A stretch of 64,000 nucleotides of DNA from Trichoplax adhaerens (lineage: Eukaryota > Animalia > Placozoa): positions 7,634,066 to 7,698,065 of the forward strand of contig NW_002060943.1 of assembly GCF_000150275.1 (NCBI RefSeq), given 5' to 3'. Numbering within the stretch: position 1 is the first letter of the stretch; each line of letters opens with the position of its first letter. Positions 32,335 through 58,011 of the stretch are shown here, one piece after another. Both the position numbers and the translations under genes were made by a program. The notes beneath the pieces were generated by a model. The model saw only the letters and a list, made by a program, of their open reading frames with translations, was not told the DNA's origin and did no database searches.

Positions 32335-35236
32335 TTATAATTCCTCATGTTTGTGTCGCTGTTCTTTTCCCGTATTATCGCCTTCGTCTTCGAACATTGG
32401 CTCATCATTATCATCTTCCATTTCATCATCTATTTCTTCTTCATCGTCATCTGCCCCATCTCGGCCTTCCATTTCCTCCATATGTGCTTGTTTTTCTCTC
32501 TCTTCTTCAGCCAATCTTTCTTCTAATATTTTTTCCCATTCTATTTTGGGAGCAGGTTCTAAAGGACCTGCAGGGTCCTCCATATTTCTAGCAACTCCTT
32601 TAAGATTTTCAATCGGCATATTTAATACATCCTCTTTTGTGTAATAACCTTTACCTTCAGGATCAATAAATTTCCGAAATAATTCATCTGCTTCCATTTG
32701 CCAAGAATCAGATAGCTCTTTATACAACACCTTGCTAAATTCTTTAAAGGTTATACGCCTTTTTTCATTCTCACGAAATGGGTCAAGTAAGTTATTACGA
32801 ACAACCATAAGATTCTTATAGCCTAAGTCGATCGTTCGATCCCCTTCTTTATACGTCCAATGGATTGGTGCTTCACTCATTGGGGGTAAATGCTTTATAT
32901 CTAAGTCATCACAGCCACTTGAATTGAAGAAACTTGTAGGAGAAAACAGCGTCGTTACAGATATTGTTCTGTTATACGATCTTACTTGATGAATATAACC
33001 TAGGTGAGAGAAAAGGAGAGTTAACACAGCCGTATTCTCTTGGCGAAAAATGTATCTTTTGGTCTATTATCGACAATTTGTTTATAGTCAATATACCTCC
33101 TGGGATATAGATACAATCGCCCGCTCTTAATGTGGCGTATGTCCAGGGTACTCGCTTTAACATTGGACGCTTTTTCATATCTACTTTTCTGACGTTAAGA
33201 TTAGAGTATCCGGAACCAGATCCTGGATCCTATTAATAAATAATGTTGATCGATTAGTTTCCATGTATAAGATTTAGCTTAGGATTTACTGTACATTTAC
33301 AGATGAATTACTAATCTCAGGTAAAATCTTAGACTTTACATTTTGTTTGAAATAGAGATACTTGTAATATCGATGGTGAATCATCATGAAATCCTAAAAG
33401 GAATTAAAGATTGAATAATGAAATAGCGAAACAAGGACTCTTTTAATATTTTGGCTGGTATTTTCTTGCTTTACACATTACTCTTTTTACTACCTAATTC
33501 TAAATCCTATGGCCTATGATCTAGATTCTAACATATTTTACAAACAAGGCTGAAATTGGCAAATACAGTCTCAGAAATACTGTAATAACGCTATCGAAAA
33601 ATAACTTCAATACTGATATCAAATTTACAGATTACTTAAATTACCTTTCTTCCGTGGACTAAACAATGAATGTTATGATCAGCATCGAAATGAACTATGG
33701 AGTTTGTACCGCCAGAGCCAATCCATAAATTTGTCTCTTGCAGATAGGTTTTAAAAGTTCCACATAAAACGCTTGGAACAATCTAAAATTTAAATAGAGA
33801 GTATTTTTATCGCTATAAAGAAAAAACTATCAGCAGTGTAAACTGTAGTACACATTGTAACAAAAATTTCCTTAGTCTTTAATCAATGCTGAAAATGAAT
33901 CCAATAGCAAAATATAATATCATAGCAACCTAAAGTAGGTAGCCGTAGTAGATATTAAGCATACGGTACTCTATGCCGAACAAAACAGATTATCTTTATG
34001 ATAAAATTTTGTATATCGAAATATCGCTAGAATGTACTATGAGGTGAAAAGATCGATTACAACTGTATGGTATAATAACTAATCGATATTCCGCGTAAAT
34101 CTCTGTATAGTTTCTCGCATCAAGAGTGTCGTATAATTTTTTACGGTCCTATGATTATTAAATACTTAGAATATTTAAGGTAATTTTCAAGCTCGTATAC
34201 ATAAATGATAGGGGTGGCTGTACCACTAATACATTTGTCCACTTTTACAGCCTTAACCAATGGCTTAGATTGAAATATACAATATTGAGAATTATATCCA
34301 TCACTACGCGCTTTTTGTTTAGCACTTAAAAAGCATCTATACATTGATAAAACCCTATATATGTATCGTCCAACAGGTGTTATCCTGAAGAGAAGGCTGT
34401 GGATATGAATATGAGTATTACACACTGTAGCAATAGTACGGGTCAACTAGAAAATTTAAAGAACTACCAATTATTTATGATTGATTACGTTATGGCAATA
34501 AAATTTAGTAGCTGCTCCTCCCTTATAGCTTCGAGTGCGAAAACTACAATTAAAATTTCTTTATGTTGTATAGCATCGCGATATATAACTAAGTTAGAAG
34601 ATTGAGTCTTTGATCAGAAAAAAACAGCCGCATAGATCGATATGATATAGTAGAAAACCTTTAAAATGGCTTAAAAGACATCGTATTGCAGTCTTTAAAA
34701 CAATTTATTGCTGAGCAGCAATTTGTATATCATTCTAATTCTACAGTATTAGTTCGGTTCTTAAAACTATAGTACCGTACCTGAACTTCAGGTCTCATCG
34801 CATCTGGTAAAACTGTTACCACATAGATATCTTCTTTCCTATATTGCTTTAGAAATCCTTTTAATACCATTCTTCGTGGTGAATATGATCGATTCTCTAC
34901 TTTTCGCTCAACTAAAACATCCAAATCGCCATAATTTTTTAGTAAATAATCATCGGTCCATAACTTTATAGCGGGTGAACCAGTAATGGCGTTACGGTAA
35001 ACCAAAGGCAATTTGTCCTTAACATGATACTTCCAGAAATCAACTGGATGCAAAAATCGATCGACATATGGTCTTACTGGACCTTCGGGTGGTCTTTGAT
35101 GCCCGAGACTTTGTAAATGACCTGGCGGACTAGTTCGCCATGGACGATACGGTGGTGGAAAAACCGGACCATCATTTACCAACGTTCCATCGATAAAGCA
35201 AAATTTTAACAAGGCAAGAAAAATCAATAACTTCAT
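32335..35236 (-). CDS. ER-luminal JmjC (cupin-like) Fe(II)/2-oxoglutarate oxygenase, paralog A
   Basis: Exons 35236-34781, 33782-33645, 33393-33340, 33229-33097, 32999-32335. Signal peptide MKLLIFLALLKFCFIDG. PAIKLWTDDYL; NLWIGSGGTNSIVHFDADHNIHCLVHGRKDF (HxD motif plus 2OG-binding K); LRAGDCIYIPGGYIHQVRS (distal His). EF-like loop DPEGKGYYTKED, acidic tail, C-terminal KHEEL*. Confidence 0.9.
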
Positions 35237-37396
35237 AGTTGTTTCTTTCAATAATGGTAAAACCAAAGTGTTCGACCAAGAACTGAGTTTTTTTATACGC
35301 TAAAAATATTTATCTAATGAATTTAATCGTCAGTTATGGATACTAGTCGGAGCAGTATGATCAATTCAAAGTTTCTAGCGCAAGATGTCTTGATTATAGT
35401 GTAACTTCGAGTTACTCTATGTTGCTATCGCGGACAACCAACAACTAAGAATGACAACTCCTGTTGTAATTAGTGAGATTGATATGCGAATGAATCATGA
35501 AACTGTACATGCTATATAGTCGTGTTTGCTCAGCGATGTACGTTAAATGCTATAGTATAATTTTTGACCTATAAAAACCAGTCACGTACAAAAGTCGTCG
35601 CGACGTTTATGGCGTAACAATTATTACTTATTGTTTCAATTCTATTGTGAATATTCATTATAATTCGTAGTGGGCATTACTTTTTTTAACTGAAAACCTA
35701 TTAACTAATTCCTTATTGAATGTTAATTCTATCGAGAGATCGACATTTAAAACAATTATGCATCATATTCGTACATACGCGTATATTTGTGATATTAAGA
35801 GGGTGTAGATATCGGGCCCAAAATCGGCTACCTGGATTATACGTATTCAACGTGTTAAATCATTAGTATATTAGCATGGTTATAACTATCGTAAACTTCT
35901 AGGCTGTCTTTACTAAATCTTTAAATCAGTTCTCACTTGACGGTAGTCATCAAATTATGAATTTGTAGTAGCAGGCTATCTATGCAAAACTATAGATCAT
36001 ACTCAGCCTTCAACGATTATAGCAGATTGAAATTAATTTCATTTTAGAAGATCTCGATCCGACTATTTATGGATATGTTCAAGTAATAAAGAAGTTAATG
36101 ATTATATTATAGAAGCTAGCGATAATTCTTTGTGAATGAATGATAACAGTCAATATGGAACTTTAATATACTGATTGATAGAATTACCTATAATAGCTAA
36201 TATACCAATTTAATATGCCTTTTTATATACTACGCTCATAAATAGATTTTATTTAAAAGACAGATTTAAAGATGTTTAATTCATCTTGCATGCCTCCAGT
36301 AAGCATTATAAAGTACCAGTAAAATCTGCATTTAATGAGATTTTAAATTCAATCATCCTTCTAGAAGGTGATTTTTCGAAAGTTAAATGGATTGCATATA
36401 TCCATATCAGACTAAATTACCGAATAACAAACTTCGATAATTTTATAATTTAATAAAGGACATCTTAAAAGCATGCGTAGGAAAACTTGCCATGCATTTA
36501 GAGTAAATTGTTAATATTGTTATAACATAACCTGTACGAAACTTTAACCCTACTAGATTTTAGGTTACACAGTTTTAAAAGTGATTAAATGCCTGAATAT
36601 ACGGATTAATCCAAGGATGCAATATACTATATATCTAAGCACGAATGCTTTTTGAGTGATAGGGAATGCTGAAGTCTAGTAGAAAATTTTCAGCTATGAT
36701 ACAAAAATTTAAATAATAGGCTTATCATAATTTTTTGAGCTCGTGGTTTTCAATGATTTTCATTTGATTTTTCTTTATAGCTAATATTTTCTTCTATCGT
36801 ATCGCTGGAATAACTAGTACTTTAATATTTCTCGATCATTAACTCCTCTATTCATTGTTTGCTGTTTTATCACTTAGTATAAGGAAGAAACATTCATTTT
36901 TTTACAACGATGTGAGGAATAGTTTTATACTATTGTCATGGTAATAATTTTAATAGCACAATGTATATACAATTTGGAGATTTTTTGTATTTTATTCGCT
37001 AAAATTTAGAATAGCTCTTATAACAATAAAATATTTTAGGCACTGACTTATAATAATTGTTTACCCATTCTCGGACGTGACCAACTAGTCAAGTCAATTA
37101 TAAGAGACAATAAGTCAATATTGTATGGAAGTAAGAAAGTTGTATTAATAATTGTTCAAGGGGAATATACGATCATGGACTTTACTATCTAATTCTAAAT
37201 AATACCTTATTTCAAATGCTGTATAGTGAAACCTTGCTTAATATTATTCCTAGTTATCTAAGCACGTATACTCAATTCATTCTAAAAGAATATTGGCAAA
37301 AAATTTCTTTCGATAGTTTATAGGGAAGTCATCAACCTTTATCGGATTGTTTGATCTTGTTCCACTACAGAAAGTTTAACCGACTACAGATTAGTA
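35237..37396. promoter_or_regulatory. Divergent intergenic region and probable promoter(s) of the JmjC pair
   Basis: 2.16 kb between head-to-head ATGs. ACGTGAC faces each gene at a similar distance (35581-35587 on -, 37075-37081 on +). Confidence 0.45.
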
Positions 37397-40300
37397 ATGA
37401 AGTTACTGATCGTTCTTCTGTTATTAAAAATTTGTTCCATTAATACCGTACCATCGGATGGGCCACAATTTCCGCCTACATTTAGACCGTGGCGTACCAT
37501 ATCACCTGGCCATTTACAGAGTTTTGGCAATCAGAGATCACCTGATGGCCCAGTTCGACCTTATATAGATCGATATCTACATCCAGTAGATTTTTGGGAG
37601 TATCACGTTAAACATAAACTACCACTTGTATATCGTAATGCCATTAATCGTTCTCCGGCTATTAAGTTATGGGATGATGAATATTTACTTAAAAACTACG
37701 GTAACTTGGATGTTTTAGTAGAGAAAAAAGTAGAAAATAGATCTTATTCACCAAGAAGAATGGTACTTAAAGCATTTCTAAATCAATATAAGAAAGAAGA
37801 TATTTACGTTGTTACCGTTTTACCAGACGCGATGAGGCCTGAAGTTCAGGTACAAATGAAATTAAAATCTAAAGTAAATTGTAAGAGAAAATGAAGCCCA
37901 GATTTTTCAATTTGTTGTTGTCTGACAATGTTTGTTACATCGGCTCATTGATAGCTTAGTAAGAACACCATTAAGCTCTATATCCTTTCTGTACTTTTAT
38001 AAATTGAATGATCCCATCTAATAACTTCAAAAATTATAGCCCTTGAATAGCAACGGTACTGTCCGAATCACTCATAAACAATTCTGGAGGTCCAAAAATT
38101 GTTGGTGAGCTAATATAGTATGTTGAAGAAATAAAAGAGTGTAAGGACTTTCATTTCCAGCTACTATCATACTGAATGTCCTCTCTGGAAAATAAGTTTA
38201 CTTTAGTCTTTCGCTATAGGATGTATTCATCTTGCACACATAGAATTAACCACACTGTCAACCACTCTCTTCGCAGTCTAATATACAAACTAAGATATGA
38301 AATTATGGATAGGTCATTTCAGCTATATTTAATAGGGAAGATACATACGTACGTATGATAGTTTATAACTGCCAATTTATTATAGCTATAACTATACGAA
38401 AGTAAATTTAGAAACACTTGTTGAATATATTAATGTATAGCGATATCAGGTATCCTATAGTAACTCATACTAGCATGAGTTACTCTGATAAAAAACATAC
38501 TTTCTACTATCTCATTAAAATATCTGTACTTCTACAAAAGTATTATTTTACTGGCATAAGTAGTCATAGAGTATTAAAATGTAAAGGTTAAATGTGGTAT
38601 GATAAATATTTTAATCTTATACTATATTGAAAAACCCTTTCCTAAACCTGGCATTATCGACGTTTAAGTTAAGATAGAAGCAGATTCGGCTTTTTCATTT
38701 CTCATCTACTATAGAATACTGCGTGTTCCTGTCCGTATTATAACGCAATAGAAGGAATAATTCTGCTTCCCAATTAAATTTTACGCTAAATACAAATCTT
38801 GTAGAAAGAATACCTAGAAACGACCGAGATATGTTTTAATGATCGAGGGAATAGTTTATTATTGCCTCTCTATTTAGTAAAATTTCACCAGCACGATCGC
38901 AGAAGTCCTTTGAGTTAAAAGAAGTATTTTTTAGATCAGAGAAATTGTAATTTTAAAATAATTTCCCTACGATTCGTACTATTAAATAAAGATATGCTAA
39001 TTGAATTTCTTATAGATCGTTCCGAGTGTGTTATGCGGAACATTTAAAACCTATCTTCAAGAAACCAATTTATGGATTGGATCTGGTGGCACTAGCTCTA
39101 TTATCCACTTTGATGCGGATCATAATATTCATTGTATGGTGCATGGAAGAAAGGTATGCAGTACTAGAATAGCATAAATAGTATTAAATAAATAATGATA
39201 GAAAGACCTGTTACACTGAGAATACGTAGAACTAATAGTAGAACTTAATTTTAATCAGTAAGCACAGTATTCTTTGTAAAAAGTTCCGCGCTATTAAATT
39301 TAACAAAATTTGACGTTGTATCTTGAGAAATCTATCATCAAGTTACGTATCTATTTATTCATTTAACATCCATAAAATTCTGTATTAGCAATCAAATTAT
39401 GAAGCGTCATGTACGCGTATACTGTATAGAACAACTTTAAAGTCCTAAAAAGCATCATAAAAATCTCTTATACTAATCCAAATTACCTCTTTCTATATCT
39501 GATTTCATGTAGGATTTCATGATGATTCATCATAGATACTATAAGTATCTGTATTTTAATCAAAATGTAAGTAATAAGAAAACAGGATTCTATATTTTTA
39601 GTGTTAGAAGCGTTTACCGTCTACTATATTTATAATTTATAGCCGTAAGCGATCAGAAAATGATAAATTTTCTAGAAATAGACAAATGATATATCAAAGA
39701 AGTCTCAAATTAATTTCACCTTTAACTATAGCACTTAATGTACCTGTACCTACTAGCATTTTCTGCCGTATAATCCACACTAGAATTCAATTAATATCCA
39801 ATATGGACTAAAATACGATTAGTAGTCATCATCACTAAAAAAATTGTAGTAAAACGGTAACTAATCAATCACTTTAACTTATAAATCCATAAGATTGGTA
39901 TTACGTTGAGATTTATATTTCCAAGCTAAGGATAAAATTATGTGAAAAATTTTTTTATTTCATTTCAATTTGTTACAGTATATGATCGACAAGTATCAAA
40001 TTTCTGACTATGAATTAATAATTATCATTCTGTGATATCTTCTCTTATTAAAGTCGCCAGGATCAGGATCCGGCTATTCTAAAATCAACGTCAATAAAGT
40101 GGACATGAATTTATATCCTCTTCTAAAGCGAGTCCCGTGGACTTATGCTACGTTAAGAGCTGGCGATTGTATTTACATTCCAGGAGGTAATGCTAAGAAT
40201 GCATTTGCCGTATTCATGATTATAGTAGTCATAAACCTTATCCTAGAAATAGCAGGCTGTAAGATCTTCGCAAAATAGATACAATTAGACCAGAGGACCT

Positions 40301-41472
40301 CGACAAAGTGATTAAATAAAGGAGTCTGTATATCTGAATGTGATGCTGCCTTATAATAAGTAGATAATCAAAGTGAACTACTGTATCTTCTTTCACTTCA
40401 AATCGATCAGGTTATGACGACCTATAATCGATGCTATTTTACAACGCTCCATTTCTCTTCTTACTGACTGAATAGGGAATTGACCGACATTAATTATAAG
40501 ATGCTAATGAGAGTTGTATCAGTTTTATGTATTTCTAAATAATAAAAGAGCCTACAATTTATCTGTTATCTTATTCAGTCGCATTTCTAATCTCAGCAGT
40601 TTTATTGATTTGCGAGATTTCAAAAAAATAGTAACTGTAACTCTTTTATTTAACCATTGAACTCTATAGTTCAAATAAATGCAAATGCTTTTCTTCAAAA
40701 TACAGAATTTTTTCCTTTAATATTTAAGTATCTGTAATGTAGCTTCAATAATAATCTCACTTAGCAATTCTTGATCTCTCCTTTAGGATACATTCACCAA
40801 GTGAAATCATATAAGAGGAGCATTTCTGTTACTACTTTATTTTCTCCAACTAAAACATTTAATTCGAGCGGCTGTGAAAATTTAACTTTGAAGTATACAC
40901 CCATGAGTGAAGCACCTATCCACTGGACATACAAAGAAGGAGATCACACTATCGATTTAGGGTACCGCAACTTAGTAATAGTCAGAAAAGACATTTTAAA
41001 GTTATTTGGGTTAGTTGCAAAGGGAAAAGCAAAAATTACGAAAGAAATGTTCATGAAATATGGAGCTAGAGAACTTTGCGAAGACTGGCAAAGACCGCCA
41101 TTAGAAGTGTTTGAAAAGTATTTTGACCCTGATGGGAATGGTTACTTTACACAAGAGGATATTGAGCAATTACCTATTGCATCACTGAAAGAAATTGTCA
41201 GAGCTATAGAAAATCCAGCAGGACCTTTAAAGGCCGCTGAAAGAATAGATTGGAACCAAGTGTTAGCAGATAGACAAGCATTAGAAAAAATGGAAGAAGA
41301 AGAGCTAAGAAGAAGACAAGAAAGGGGTGAGGACGAGGACGAAGAGGACGAAGACGATGATCGACGAGAAGAGAGTGATGATGATAGTGAAGGAGAAGAC
41401 GATAATGATGGACAACGTGACCTTCAAAATGAATATGATAGAAAACAACAGCATAAACACGAAGAACTTTAA
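37397..41472 (+). CDS. ER-luminal JmjC (cupin-like) Fe(II)/2-oxoglutarate oxygenase, paralog B
   Basis: Exons 37397-37849, 39016-39153, 39513-39566, 40054-40186, 40787-41472, with intron positions identical to paralog A. Signal peptide MKLLIVLLLLKICSINT. SIIHFDADHNIHCMVHGRKDF; GDCIYIPGGYIHQVKS. EF-hand loop DPDGNGYFTQED, D/E-rich tail, KHEEL*. Confidence 0.9.
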
Positions 41473-46400: not shown

Positions 46401-49003
46401 TGTTCTATATCAGCATTTTTATCTTTAAATGAATTGTTAGCTTGCATCTTAATTCTTACAGACGGTCTAGGTGTAAATTAATGATTAATGTAAGCTCATG
46501 AGTATGACTTTATTACTAAATAAATATTTCGTTTTTGTGTTAACATCACATTAGGTAGTTCTAAATCTGGCTAATATAAATAGAAAGTCAATATTATGTC
46601 TAGCAACTACAATTCCATGGAGTGGACTTATAAGGCGAATGTAGGTTATAAAATTACAACTGATAGGGATTGATTTGGTTTTAGCAGCTGCAAAATAAAA
46701 TTTTGTTTCCATCACGTCCATCATATAAAATTTATTTTAAATTTTGATACGGTAATATTGTGCTTTATCATGATAATCCGATAAAACGCAAGTTATATTT
46801 ATCAAAAAAGGTACTATAACTTGCTTGATAATGCCTGAAATATGAAGTTTACTTTATTAGAATAGAGAAATGGCTAATAATATTATTTACCATCCCAATC
46901 AGACATGCATGTTCTTGATAAGCACCGAACCATCCCAAGAAACCGATTAAGCCAATAAAACATCCAGACACAATAACTAGAATCGTTCCAGTTCTAAATA
47001 AATTATTTGTTAAAACCGATGTGTTGGCATTGGAAATTAATATCCAGACTCCAACACCAACAGTCGTAATTCCCATAATCTATAAAAAGATCAATTAAAT
47101 GATAACATTGAGAATGGCTATTTTGTAATATATATTTATACGAGCATAGCTGTAGGCTATCAGTGAAAATCAAAGTTAAATGATGCTGGTGAATGTTTTA
47201 ATATTTTAATAATTAAACATTTTAACATGTCACTAAACTGACGATAACCTTGATTTTTGTAAGCTAAATATTGCATTAAAATACGGGATATTGCGTATTA
47301 GATATTATGTTCGTAAGAAACAAACGAAACGACCTTTATTACCAGCTTTTCAAATACTAAATTGTATATTAAACTAGTAATTATGGATAAAGTGCAACAG
47401 TGGGCCGGCATATAGACTATCGTAAGTGATAAACTGGAGGTGATGAAGCTCTAGCTAGTTATCATATTAAATTAGAAATTATTGCACCGTATTTTGGAAA
47501 TAAAATTCAAGAATTAAGCAAAATTAGTTAAATTAATTTAGTGCGTTTGTATTTTATATTTTATTATTAATTAAATTGATGACAATCAAACAAGTTAAAT
47601 TTATCACTGGAATTAGAGATAAATAATTGCGGAATTAAAATTTATTCAAATTTTACCCTATTATAAATTTACTAGATATGTTTCATTATCAATAATTTTA
47701 TAATCTGAAGATAGACCTAAATCGCAGCTGATTGCAGCATATTATTCATCGTCACGATCTGATAAACTAAAACTTTCAATCTCGATTTGTGTTCATATCT
47801 ACATTCTTCCGTACAGTGCGATATAAACTTAATTCATGCACAAACAATTACATGCTGTATAACTACGAAATAGTTTTACGATACATCCATCAAATACAAT
47901 TATAAACCATTCTTAATCTATTTAAATTACATATCTTTTGTAATAAGTATTTTAGAGAAATTAAAATTAAGCTCAATCAAAAAATACCAGCAAATAACTG
48001 TATGTAGAAGGGTGGCATTTCTTGTATACAATTGTAGTCCTGACTAACCTCTTCTATAGCTTTTTTATCGACGTATAGTACCACGCTTTTAATGCATTTT
48101 CTAATTTATAGCATGGTGTTAAATAATTTTGATATGTAGTACTGTACCGATTTCTATTCGACAGTAAGTAATATTTCAATCAATTGTAAATTATTTATCG
48201 ATATCTAAAATGATGTTTCATTTATTATAAATTAATTTCTACAGGAATATATCTACAGGATAACTATATTAGCAACCTAATGCCTGTAAGATATGTAAGA
48301 TGTTATAACTGCTAAGGATAAAGTAATACTAATAAATAATGTGAATAGATACGACCTAATCTTCTATTAGGATTGAGACTTTTAAAGTTGGTCTTTTATT
48401 ATATGTCGAAACCAGGATACTAAGTAGCCCGATTGAACTATTAATATATGAAACGATGATGAGAAAAAATGAAAACAGTGCAAGTAAATGTTACTTTTAG
48501 GTCTGAAATTTTTAATTACAATCTTTTTGTATTAAATCCTGATTGAAAATGTTCCAAGATTTGGAAGAGAATTTTTGCTTTCTACTTAAAATAAGATGTA
48601 CGGAATGTTAATCTATGACGACTGACTATATTCTTTGTACATCTTAAAGAAGTAGCAGGATCTTAGCGGTATTAGATGATTATTTGCTACTAGGCTAGTA
48701 GTAATAATTTAATGTTAATTCGTGGCACATGGGAAATTTAAATTGATCGATTTCAAAAATCGCAAAATATGAAAACCAATTAGCCAGTTTAGGAGAATAG
48801 AATTACGGGAAAATGCTATCTTAAAAATATGAATAATATGTTTTGATTTATCTTGTTACTTTAAGCTATCGAATCGCTAGTAAATTATACACTATCAATC
48901 TAATTAAACTATTTTTTACCCAAAAGACGATATTAAAGGCAAAAAGGGACCAACGGGCATATTTCATTTTGCCTTTAGCTTTTACTTCACCTTTAATAGC
49001 CAT
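43495..49003 (-). CDS. Tetraspanin B with an extended ~200-aa acidic/disordered C-terminal tail
   Basis: Exons 49003-48920 (..KYARWSLFAFNIVFW), 47079-46891 (GFLGWFGAYQEHACL), 45903-45829 (LEIAAGVW), 45681-45577, 44857-44675 (YFCCG..VPSSCC..GC), 44345-44262 (GCQF..), 44145-43495 (VFGIFCSVLLLDYY + tail ..EDLEYENAAF*). All introns phase 0. Confidence 0.92.
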
Positions 49004-55100: not shown

Positions 55101-58011
55101 TCATTGTGTTGAGATTGGCTGCGTTTAAGGAATTAATACTACATAATAAAATTAGCTATTGCAAATCTCCTACAATTTGAGTCTAGTTTGATAACTTTAT
55201 TTTATTTTAATGACGCCTACAATTAAGAATTTAATGTTACATTTAATAAACTAAGCTAAGGGCAAATCTTGGATTTAATTTATTATACTGTATTTCAGAC
55301 TTGTAAAGAATGATTATAATTGACATGCTATCATTAGATCAATTGCTCAATCTGCAGTAGATCTTTACTTCCTGAATGTAATTTTAATGATTTTATTTGT
55401 TCCAAGACTGCTTACGATCAAGATAATAGTCTTACTAATATTTAATTAGCTAATCTGGTATAAACCTTTTCGGATATGAGTCTAATTTGATCTTTTCATT
55501 TTATATTTAAATTTAAATTTATTAAAATTTAGGAAATAATTTACACCCTATTTTTGCATATTTCTTTCGCAGTTATCCGGTTTCGCGGTGATCGGTTTGG
55601 CGGGATATAACCTCGCTACCTACTGGGATATAGCAACAATTGCTGCGGATAGCGCAGTTACTATCGGAACTATTCTCTTGCTTACTGCTGGTATTATCAC
55701 CACTCTAGCTGGCATATTAGGCTTTTGTGGTTCACTTAATCGGCATCCAGGAATGCTACTTGGAGTATGTTATAACAAAATTACACTTCTGTCATAACTG
55801 ACAGTACCGTAGTTTAATTTAATGAATTCTTTTAAGATTTATGATTGGAACCTAATTAAGCTAACAGTCGAATTCACTGGTAGGCAAAGTGTAATAGCAT
55901 ATCTCCACCATTATTAACATTTACAATGGATTATATTATATTATCTTTTTAGTTTTTTATCCTATTGCTTTTAATATTTGGATTTGAAGTAGCTGCCGGA
56001 ATTTATACGGTTGTGCATCGCCAAGAGGTATTATAATCCTTAAACTTTATCAATTACTAGACTGCCAATTGCAAAGTCATAATCTCTTAATTTATTAATT
56101 TCAACTAGGTAATAGATGCATTAAGGACTAAATTATCTAACGATATTCAAAATAAATATACACCTAACAATCTGGGTATTCAAAGAGGACTCAATGCAAT
56201 TCAAACTCAGGTAAACAAGTTTTACAATCTAAAGATAATTTGTGTACACCATTAGCTCTGTATACAAGTTAATGGACGGCATAAAATTTAACTTATTAAA
56301 CCTAAATATCCATGATTAAAAGAATTACAGCTTACAAGTTACCTAACGGACTGTTTTCGTTAATTCCACATTATTTACTAGTTTTACAAGAATTACATAC
56401 TGTATGCTAAAGTTACAATATCCAAGATAAAACTAATCGATCTTGAGTTGGACCAGATTTAGCGAATTATTTATTCATTGAACCAAATAAGTGCAAACAA
56501 AAGCTGAAGTAACTTCCTATAAATCATGTTGGCATCGTAGAATCTAGAGATATAGATCATGCTACCGTAACTGTATGAACATTTTCACTAATGCTACTAT
56601 AAGAATATAAGATGAGTGAATTTACAAGATCATAAATAGGATAAATACTGACCGTACTTAAATATATGATTACACGCCAAATGCCCAAATTTGTAGACAT
56701 AGCTAAGATTATCTAAATTCTTCATGGTTGAAACTGTAAACAAATTCATTTCCGATCTTTACTATACTGTATGCAAGGTAGCTTACATATCTAAAATACT
56801 ATCGCACTAAATTGCATCAGATCATGTGCCGTGCGAAATTTCCAGATTCCAGATAGAATAGAGCTTACTTGAATTTGTACACATATAAAAAGTAATATAA
56901 AGGTTGGCATTAATAATGTTAAAACGGAATTGATAAATACTGCATATATATATGCTTTATGCAAAGGAAATCAAATTTTTGTAAATTTTATTCATTCTGC
57001 ATGCATCATGTGATATTAATATTTGCAATTAAATCCGAATAAAAATATTTAGATGACTTTTAATCGCATCAATTTAATATAATAAGTATTGTGTGCACAC
57101 GCTTATCCTCCTCCTAATATTTTATGAAGTCTCTAAATTCATTTCGCGATATAGTTTAAATGCTGTGGCTCCAGTAACTATACCGATTGGGCAAGATCAA
57201 CCTGGGGTGCCGGTAAAACTATCGCTTATCCAGTACCTGATTCTTGTTGCAAAGTTTACGTTCCAGGTTGCGGATTAGATGAAGTACAAAGAGGTGGTGC
57301 AAATCTAACCGGAATAAACCTGAATGTAAGTATGACAAACTTTCGTATACCAAATGAATAAAAGTTTTGGGAAATAGTAAGGGTAAATGAATTTAAAAAT
57401 CGCACAATGTCCAATCAATAGGGTTGCGTTCAATCAGTTTCTAATACAATATCAGAAAATGCCTACATTATTTTGGGAGTTGGTGTCGGTATTGGTGCCT
57501 TGCAGGTAAATAGTCACTTCAAATGTTCTAGATATTGTTATTCTTGCTATTTATCGCTTTATGATAAAGTTGATAAGATTCGCTGATATCGCTGAAGTCT
57601 TTGTTATAGTCGTAATATACTGTACACATTATTATTCTAACGAGCACATATCACTGTTATACGATTTTTAATATAGCGTAAGAACAATACGCATCAATTT
57701 AGTCCTATAACCAAATATAACCAAGTTATAAATAATTAAGTCTATTACTACAGTGAATGCACCGTAAACTTAAAAATAGTTAATGCTATATGTATACAGT
57801 TACATGTATTGTAAAGATAAAGTTATTCTGAGTTGATACGCTACTAAATACGTATATCGATAAATTCTATCTCTTATAAATGTTAATGAAAAATTGTTAT
57901 AACAACTTGATTGTAAATATTTCGTTCGCTTTTCAACGTTCTCTTTTACAGATCTTCGGTATGGTTTGTTCCATGATTTTATATTGCGACTTAAAAGAAG
58001 ATAAAGATTAA
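52164..58011 (+). CDS. Tetraspanin C (CD63/TSPAN4-like)
   Basis: Exons 52164-52220 (MGCGNLSRILLIVFNFIFV), 55573-55764 (AGILGFCGS), 55953-56027 (FEVAAGIY), 56109-56210, 57155-57325 (FKCCGSSNYTDW..YPVPDSCC..GC), 57422-57505 (GCVQ..), 57952-58011 (IFGMVCSMILYCDLKEDKD*). Confidence 0.93.
52300..52900. repeat. Degenerate ~80-84-bp minisatellite in intron 1 of tetraspanin C
   Basis: A core resembling ttctaaatcatcgt recurs at about 52319, 52398, 52482, 52564, 52787 and 52870. Each copy is preceded by a similar tatttctt-c-aatatt--aaa-ga segment. Confidence 0.65.
53744..54007. repeat. ~143-bp degenerate tandem duplication in intron 1 of tetraspanin C
   Basis: aaattggtgttaaagattataaatt..ttaagttattcaaatgttacgggataaggcctaacc..gttttccctgat aligns with aaattggtcttaaaaattacaaatc..ttaagttatccaattatcacaggataaggcgaacc..gttttcgctgat. 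Confidence 0.7.

Follow-up and report, generated by a model that had tools for sequence, protein, structure and literature searches.

Which kind of enzyme is encoded by two neighboring genes of the placozoan Trichoplax adhaerens that are transcribed away from each other and whose products combine a JmjC-type core with a hydrophobic N-terminus and the C-terminal ending KHEEL? The genes occupy positions 32335-41472 of a 64,000-nucleotide stretch of contig C1414 (genome G000), the whole of which is called the window in the following. Gene A (TRIADDRAFT_52143; 32335..35236, minus strand; 481 amino acids) is defined by open reading frames (ORFs), sequence, RNA contigs, and the public models P0001 and P0064, and gene B (37397..41472, plus strand; 487 amino acids) by sequence, RNA contigs, and P0169, the model of its ortholog in Trichoplax sp. 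H2. An earlier note on this DNA had described a head-to-head pair of JmjC paralogs and proposed an uncharacterised luminal hydroxylation system of the endoplasmic reticulum (ER). ORFs, RNA contigs, and matches to Pfam Cupin_8 confirmed the pair as two head-to-head, divergently transcribed five-exon paralogs. As far as can be judged from sequence, their products are probably soluble, ER-lumen-resident Fe(II)/2-oxoglutarate (2OG) oxygenases of the secreted JMJD5-like/HRJD family. The genes do not represent a novel type of system, the family having been defined in 2010 and very probably renamed HRJD in 2019. "Uncharacterised" was therefore too strong, as the family already had a name (PMC2938197) and is very probably HRJD, for which RNA interference (RNAi) and fly data are available (PMC6390904, PMC11295675).

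Catalytic core, predicted targeting signals and C-terminal module

Searches were carried out with single exons, and the public models P0001, P0064, and P0169 served as full-length stand-ins. Pfam Cupin_8 was matched by exons 1, 2, and 4 of gene B, by exon 1 of gene A, and by the full-length H2 ortholog of gene A (1.8e-28). A family profile built from 20 relatives matched JMJD5 (2e-24), JMJD7 (1e-15), TYW5 (4e-10), and FIH (1e-7). In a single-sequence search with the gene A protein, JMJD7 was the best match (7.8e-9), slightly ahead of JMJD5. Also, the AlphaFold full-length model (predicted local distance difference test, pLDDT, 76) matched the fold of JMJD5 with a template modelling (TM) score to target of 0.79-0.84, and JMJD7 was matched as well.

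In the profile alignment to JMJD5, HFD corresponds to H-Q-D, GRK to GRK, and Y-I-H-Q-V to Y-W-H-Y-V. In both genes, HFD, GRK, and YIHQV fall on the H-x-D motif, the lysine, and the distal histidine of JMJD5 and JMJD7, in agreement with the intact iron triad and GRK lysine claimed before. Here and below, features of gene A lie on the minus strand and those of gene B on the plus strand. According to these alignments, the H-F-D iron ligands are located at 33684..33692 in gene A and at 39106..39114 in gene B (exon 2 in both), the 2OG-binding Lys of GRK at 33645-33647 and 39151-39153, and the distal iron-binding His of YIHQV at 32989..32991 and 40795..40797, respectively. The GHxxxhG hallmark (motif as in PMC2938197) reads GHLQSLG in gene A (35102..35122) and GHLQSFG in gene B (37508..37528), and its residues G39, H40, and G45 are invariant in a 20-sequence alignment. 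Four cysteines, C159, C192, C268, and C303 (P0064 numbering), are likewise invariant in the family alignment and presumably form disulfides.

Both proteins start with MKLLI followed by a stretch of hydrophobic residues (Kyte-Doolittle 9-mer maximum 2.7-3.1), and a hydrophobic N-terminal leader is present in almost all full-length relatives. The predicted signal peptide comprises ~17 codons in gene A (35186..35236; hydrophobic 9-mer maximum of 2.69 at residue 2, with a model helix at residues 2-13 followed by a low-confidence linker) and ~14-17 codons in gene B (37397..37447; maximum of 3.14 in P0169). From the hydrophobicity, the -3/-1 rule applied by eye, and the family-wide conservation, we infer that it would be cleavable in both proteins. 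N-x-S/T sequons also occur in both. The acidic tails, 45% Asp and Glu over the last 75 residues in each protein, extend over 32338..32562 in gene A and 41245..41469 in gene B and end with KHEEL (HEEL at 32338-32349 and 41458-41469); the hydrophobic N-terminus, the D/E tail, and the terminal KHEEL had all been described correctly. Within the family, 91 of 105 proteins end with ..EL (RDEL 26, HDEL 22, KVEL 13, HEEL 11, KDEL 9), and most of the proteins without it are truncated models. The PROSITE ER-targeting pattern [KRHQSA][DENQ]EL is fitted by 74 of the 105 relatives and by the HEEL of both window genes. Signal leader, sequons, the four invariant cysteines, the intact Fe/2OG site, HEEL, and the prevalence of ..EL among relatives together argue for an ER-luminal JmjC oxygenase, which was also the central proposal of the earlier note and is still the best reading.

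Between the core and the acidic end, an EF-hand-pair-like domain is predicted at 40960..41310 in gene B, with its second loop DPDGNGYFTQED at 41125-41160, and at 32500..32835 in gene A, with the loop DPEGKGYYTKED at 32629-32664. The gene B module modelled alone (AF2; pLDDT 88) folds into two helix-loop-helix units whose loops contain short strands, and the gene A domain was delimited by the secondary structure of the full model and by loop analysis. Nearly all listed Foldseek matches and all top 50 VIA matches are EF-hand pairs, including P4H-TM and FKBP14; in Foldseek, none of the matches of the C-terminal domain reached E 0.001. With Pfam, the last exon of gene B gave a sub-threshold EF-hand_6 match (E 0.03) and that of gene A no match, EF-hand models (EF-hand_7) scored above the cut-off in a Ciona relative, and the family profile reached calmodulin at ~1e-3. 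The fold of an EF-hand pair is therefore well supported; the Ca2+ ligands are not. In the gene B loop (D-P-D-G-N-G...D), the ligand positions 1, 3, 5, and 12 are occupied by D, D, N, and D, respectively, an acceptable set although position 12 holds Asp and not Glu, and the loop could bind Ca2+ weakly. The corresponding residues in gene A (D-P-E-G-K-G...) are D, E, K, and D, with Lys at ligand position 5, where the family consensus has Lys or Arg. Thus, the EF-hand-like loop noted before is present in both proteins, but with acceptable ligands in gene B only. Within the family, Ca2+ binding looks most credible from sequence in a subset of ~700-amino-acid relatives (P0124, P0125, P0126, P0136, and P0137, from Ciona and others). 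Two EF-hand loops each follow the core in P0124 (Ciona, ends RDEL) and P0012 (ends KTEL), at least one of them fully canonical.

In the proposed mechanism, the N-terminal leader would bring the protein into the ER, where a JMJD5/JMJD7-like double-stranded beta-helix would bind Fe(II) via HFD...H and 2OG via the GRK lysine, the ligands being shown by the alignment. The enzyme would then hydroxylate a side chain of secretory-pathway proteins, possibly Arg or Lys if JMJD5 and JMJD7 are a guide. Judging by the motif and its conservation in the family, the KDEL receptor would read HEEL and return escaped enzyme from the Golgi. The C-terminal module with its EF-hand-pair fold may allow weak Ca2+ binding in gene B and is more likely structural or substrate-docking in gene A and most relatives, and the acidic tail appears to resemble the tails with which other ER residents bind Ca2+ at low affinity.

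Place in the secreted JMJD5-like (very probably HRJD) family

Iyer et al. 2010 (PMC2938197, Table 1) defined a 'secreted JMJD5-like family' by the GHxxxhG motif and conserved cysteines. It was found in animals only, is absent from vertebrates, arthropods, and nematodes, and comprises three subfamilies with lineage-specific expansions, a large one of them in Trichoplax; hydroxylation of cell-surface proteins was predicted as function, and JMJD8 (HxH) was kept as a separate family (PMC2938197). The window genes belong to this family, as GHxxxhG, cysteines, core, distribution, and subfamilies all match. Cao et al. 2019 (PMC6390904) described the HRJD genes as JmjC-only genes whose closest human paralog is KDM8 and which were lost in vertebrates, arthropods, and nematodes; 16 copies were counted in T. 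adhaerens, HRJD and KDM8 were split at bootstrap 100, and planarians died during regeneration upon HRJD RNAi. In a 2024 study (PMC11295675), planarian HRJDs were expressed in flies, where they were located in the cytoplasm and not in the nucleus and improved gut junctions non-cell-autonomously. Histone demethylation is proposed in the HRJD papers (PMC6390904, PMC11295675). Because the closest human paralog is KDM8, the loss pattern is the same, and 16 Trichoplax genes compare with ~19 loci found here, the secreted JMJD5-like family is very probably the HRJD family. A signal peptide, a KDEL-type ending, the ER, and an EF-hand-like domain are unmentioned in the searchable main text of these three papers (PMC2938197, PMC6390904, PMC11295675), as far as the individual terms were looked up in each of them, and literature searches on JmjC combined with EF-hand, HDEL/KDEL, or secretion terms gave no match. 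The ER-retrieval ending is an underappreciated family feature, and together with the signal leader it points to residence in the ER lumen.

Among known systems, JMJD5/KDM8 (an arginyl C-3 hydroxylase; 6f4m, 4gjy) gave the best profile match as well as the best fold match when the JmjC domain is taken as a whole, and shares the Fe/2OG ligands. However, JMJD5 is nuclear or cytosolic and has no signal peptide, EF-like domain, or xDEL ending, all three of which are present or predicted in the window genes. At a separate T. adhaerens locus (C1413:3049115-3049474, minus strand), a 60-amino-acid exon matches human JMJD5 at 1e-21. The window genes were therefore rejected as JMJD5 orthologs, given this canonical JMJD5 elsewhere in Trichoplax and the HRJD/KDM8 bootstrap of 100 (PMC6390904), and are considered JMJD5 paralogs. 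JMJD7, a (3S)-lysyl hydroxylase, has the aligned HxD, Lys, and His in common with gene A, but is cytosolic or nuclear, has a different C-terminal dimerisation region, and gave a weaker profile match than JMJD5. Vertebrate JMJD8 has a JmjC-only core, an N-terminal signal, and a location in the ER lumen, as in the predicted layout of the window genes (PMC5684140). By published descriptions it is nevertheless set apart from these HFD proteins, since JMJD8 carries HxH, no described KDEL-type ending, and no domain beyond JmjC (PMC5684140, PMC2938197), which supports the earlier statement that JMJD8 does not have this architecture. Eight other T. adhaerens Cupin_8 loci were translated in search of an HxH (JMJD8-type) gene, and none was found. 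By eye only, three such loci were assigned as JMJD7-like (C1408:5766644-5767909), TYW5-like (C1400:1262105-1262374), and JMJD6-type (C1413:3442566-3443123).

Two ER proteins resemble the window genes in layout. P4H-TM (6tp5), one of the proteins whose fold matched the C-terminal domain, is an ER-luminal Fe/2OG oxygenase with an EF-hand pair, and its physiological substrates are not established (PMC7948501). It differs by a P4H-type fold, an inserted EF domain with two true Ca2+ sites, and a membrane anchor in place of a KDEL-type retrieval ending (PMC7948501). The ER-resident FKBP14 (4msp), found among the VIA fold matches, has the order enzyme domain, EF-hand pair, and ER-retrieval tetrapeptide, with an unrelated catalytic domain (prolyl isomerase). 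The ER-resident EF-hand FKBPs end with HDEL or HEEL.

To survey the family, the last exon of gene B was scanned against 1.84 billion representative proteins, giving 63 matches, of which about a dozen were long enough for the whole layout. Two word-index searches, whose reach is limited by the word index, added ~100 relatives. The named source organisms are sponges, cnidarians, placozoans, echinoderms, hemichordates, amphioxus, tunicates, molluscs, an annelid, a brachiopod, a bryozoan, and a flatworm; within the limits of the word index, no relatives from vertebrates, arthropods, or nematodes were among the named sources. Database names are inconsistent (KDM8-like, JMJD7-like, TYW5-like, uncharacterized), and none of the relatives found carries JMJD8-like as source name. 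Relatives with HxH at the iron site come, where the source is named, from molluscs, a brachiopod, an annelid, and a flatworm and include P0049, P0058, P0059, P0146, P0152, P0156, P0158, P0159, P0163, P0167, P0168, and P0170. The change is the one that defines vertebrate JMJD8, and convergence and kinship are both possible.

In the T. adhaerens genome, the family profile detected ~19 loci: the window pair and ~17 further loci in three tandem clusters, with ~9 on C1409 (3416789-3417963 and 3463354-3506572), 5 on C1410 (8078180-8103733), and 3 on C1412 (2725479-2736991). The last exon, searched against the same genome, matched the window pair alone, and the other clusters need the family profile to be found. 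Three groups emerge from a tree built on the 135 N-terminal residues, with the window pair as sole Trichoplax members of the first and the C1409 and C1410 genes in the other two; C1412 was left out. In the C1409 genes, the iron site reads H-K-D. In the N-terminal-region tree, A and B are sisters with support of 100/99. Their protein identity is 80-94% in exons 1-4 and 54% in the last exon, synonymous sites are saturated in exons 1-4, and the ratio of nonsynonymous to synonymous substitution rates (dN/dS) is 0.06-0.09 where computable. Because Trichoplax sp. H2 carries an identical ortholog of each copy, the duplication predates the split of T. adhaerens and H2. The two genes go back to an old duplication in placozoans, and both copies are held under purifying selection.

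Alternative explanations and consequences of a proposed ER location

An enzyme of the ER would fit the cytoplasmic, non-nuclear location of HRJDs and their non-cell-autonomous effect on junctions in flies (PMC11295675). Several points weigh against the reading of A and B as ER-luminal oxygenases with the layout given above. The identity with HRJD rests on matching properties, and the HRJD papers treat the family as epigenetic regulators (PMC6390904, PMC11295675). The scores of the EF-hand fold matches are weak (E ~0.1 in Foldseek, Z 4.4-5.7 in VIA), and few family members have a canonical loop, only 8 of 93 relatives by a relaxed and 2 by a strict pattern; with Lys at a ligand position of gene A in addition, little speaks for the Ca2+-responsive enzyme that had been proposed. 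Also, HxH replaces HxD in 14 of 105 relatives, all lophotrochozoan where the source is known, and parts of the family may therefore be catalytically altered.

The non-cell-autonomous fly effect (PMC11295675), together with the classification of the family as secreted proteins whose cysteines form disulfides and whose predicted substrates lie at the cell surface (PMC2938197), would also suit hydroxylases that are truly secreted or displayed at the cell surface and modify matrix or surface proteins outside the cell, as originally predicted by Iyer et al. 2010. We regard this as unlikely in view of the KDEL-type endings, which are nearly universal in full-length members and represented by HEEL in A and B. 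Moreover, the ER supplies 2OG, Fe(II), and ascorbate, and the known secretory-pathway 2OG oxygenases act there. ER residence without catalysis, the JmjC fold being used for binding in a chaperone, a lectin-like binder, or a Ca2+ buffer, is suspected for JMJD8, whose HxH led its authors to doubt an activity (PMC5684140). The tail with its 45% Asp and Glu and the HxH variants of lophotrochozoan relatives could be understood in the same way, but every aligned Fe/2OG ligand is kept in A and B, their catalytic exons are under strong purifying selection, and HxD is kept in 91 of 105 relatives, which makes a purely binding role quite improbable. The least probable case, and a very doubtful one, is that of cytosolic or nuclear epigenetic regulators acting as histone demethylases, as proposed for HRJDs from their kinship with KDM8 (PMC6390904, PMC11295675). 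It is at odds with the hydrophobic leader, the ER-retrieval ending, the invariant cysteines, and the sequons, and expressed HRJDs were not nuclear (PMC11295675). Also, JMJD5 itself is titled arginyl hydroxylase in solved-structure entries, and Trichoplax has a separate canonical JMJD5 gene.

If the ER-luminal reading of A and B is extended to the whole family, we lean slightly towards HRJD genes, which the literature connects with whole-body regeneration, being ER-luminal protein hydroxylases that act on secreted or membrane proteins and are not histone demethylases. To our knowledge, a JmjC enzyme whose catalytic site is intact has not been described as working inside the ER; the iron site of JMJD8 is altered, and the 2OG oxygenases known from the lumen come from other fold families. 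If the HRJD genes are such hydroxylases, a secretory-pathway hydroxylation system would have been lost from vertebrates, arthropods, and nematodes, and the death of planarians upon RNAi as well as the non-cell-autonomous rescue of fly gut junctions would stem from modified secretory cargo. The family is ancient (sponges to amphioxus), has ~19 loci in Trichoplax, and is missing from the main model animals, and has therefore been biochemically neglected. A role in the ER would redirect the search for substrates, since the HRJD literature supplies phenotypes but assumes a chromatin role.

Gene models, transcripts and neighboring features

The exons of gene A, stop codon included, are located at 35236-34781, 33782-33645, 33393-33340, 33229-33097, and 32999-32335 according to sequence and RNA joints. 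All four splice joints are present at the exact model positions in contigs from RNA libraries of three studies, and a single 2-kb RNA contig covers all five exons. For gene B, the exons derived from the sequence are 37397-37849, 39016-39153, 39513-39566, 40054-40186, and 40787-41472, stop codon included; its RNA contigs start near 37015-37258 and stop at the exon-1 donor at 37849. The start codons of A and B are separated by a spacer (35237..37396), in which transcript contigs begin near 35453-35487 for gene A and near 37015-37258 for gene B, leaving ~1.5-1.8 kb without strong RNA cover.

The public models differ at exon 3, which is skipped in P0001, the T. adhaerens model of gene A, and in P0169, the H2 ortholog of gene B, the latter being otherwise identical to gene B, and extended by 39 nucleotides through a later donor in P0064 (gene A ortholog, H2). 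The short form of 54 nucleotides (33340-33393 on the minus strand, 39513-39566 on the plus strand) is the one backed by RNA contigs, including one gene B contig whose length is compatible with inclusion of exon 3. Its product corresponds to the beta-strand of the JmjC core directly after the GRK lysine.

Tetraspanins encoded nearby had been suggested as clients of the enzymes. Pfam Tetraspanin matches were found in the window at 46885-47103 (minus strand) and 57152-57523 (plus strand), and more lie just beyond the window end. No tetraspanin Pfam matches were present near the other three family clusters (C1409, C1410, C1412); the proximity is limited to the window locus, and the linkage was rejected. 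In the 2024 fly study, HRJD expression preserved, among other features, the location of the tetraspanin Tsp2A at junctions (PMC11295675), which we consider a coincidence and not evidence for a client.

Residues 11-64 of gene B exon 5 (40819-40980), which connect the JmjC core to the EF-like domain, contain an invariant Cys and a W-T-Y...G-D motif. Pfam made no HYR_4C call on exon 5 itself. The segment matches 6-14 repeats each in several long proteins (P0019, P0029, P0038, P0045, P0047, and P0053), and in the two of these that were scanned, P0019 and P0047, Pfam HYR_4C repeats were found together with a bacterial Por secretion tail.

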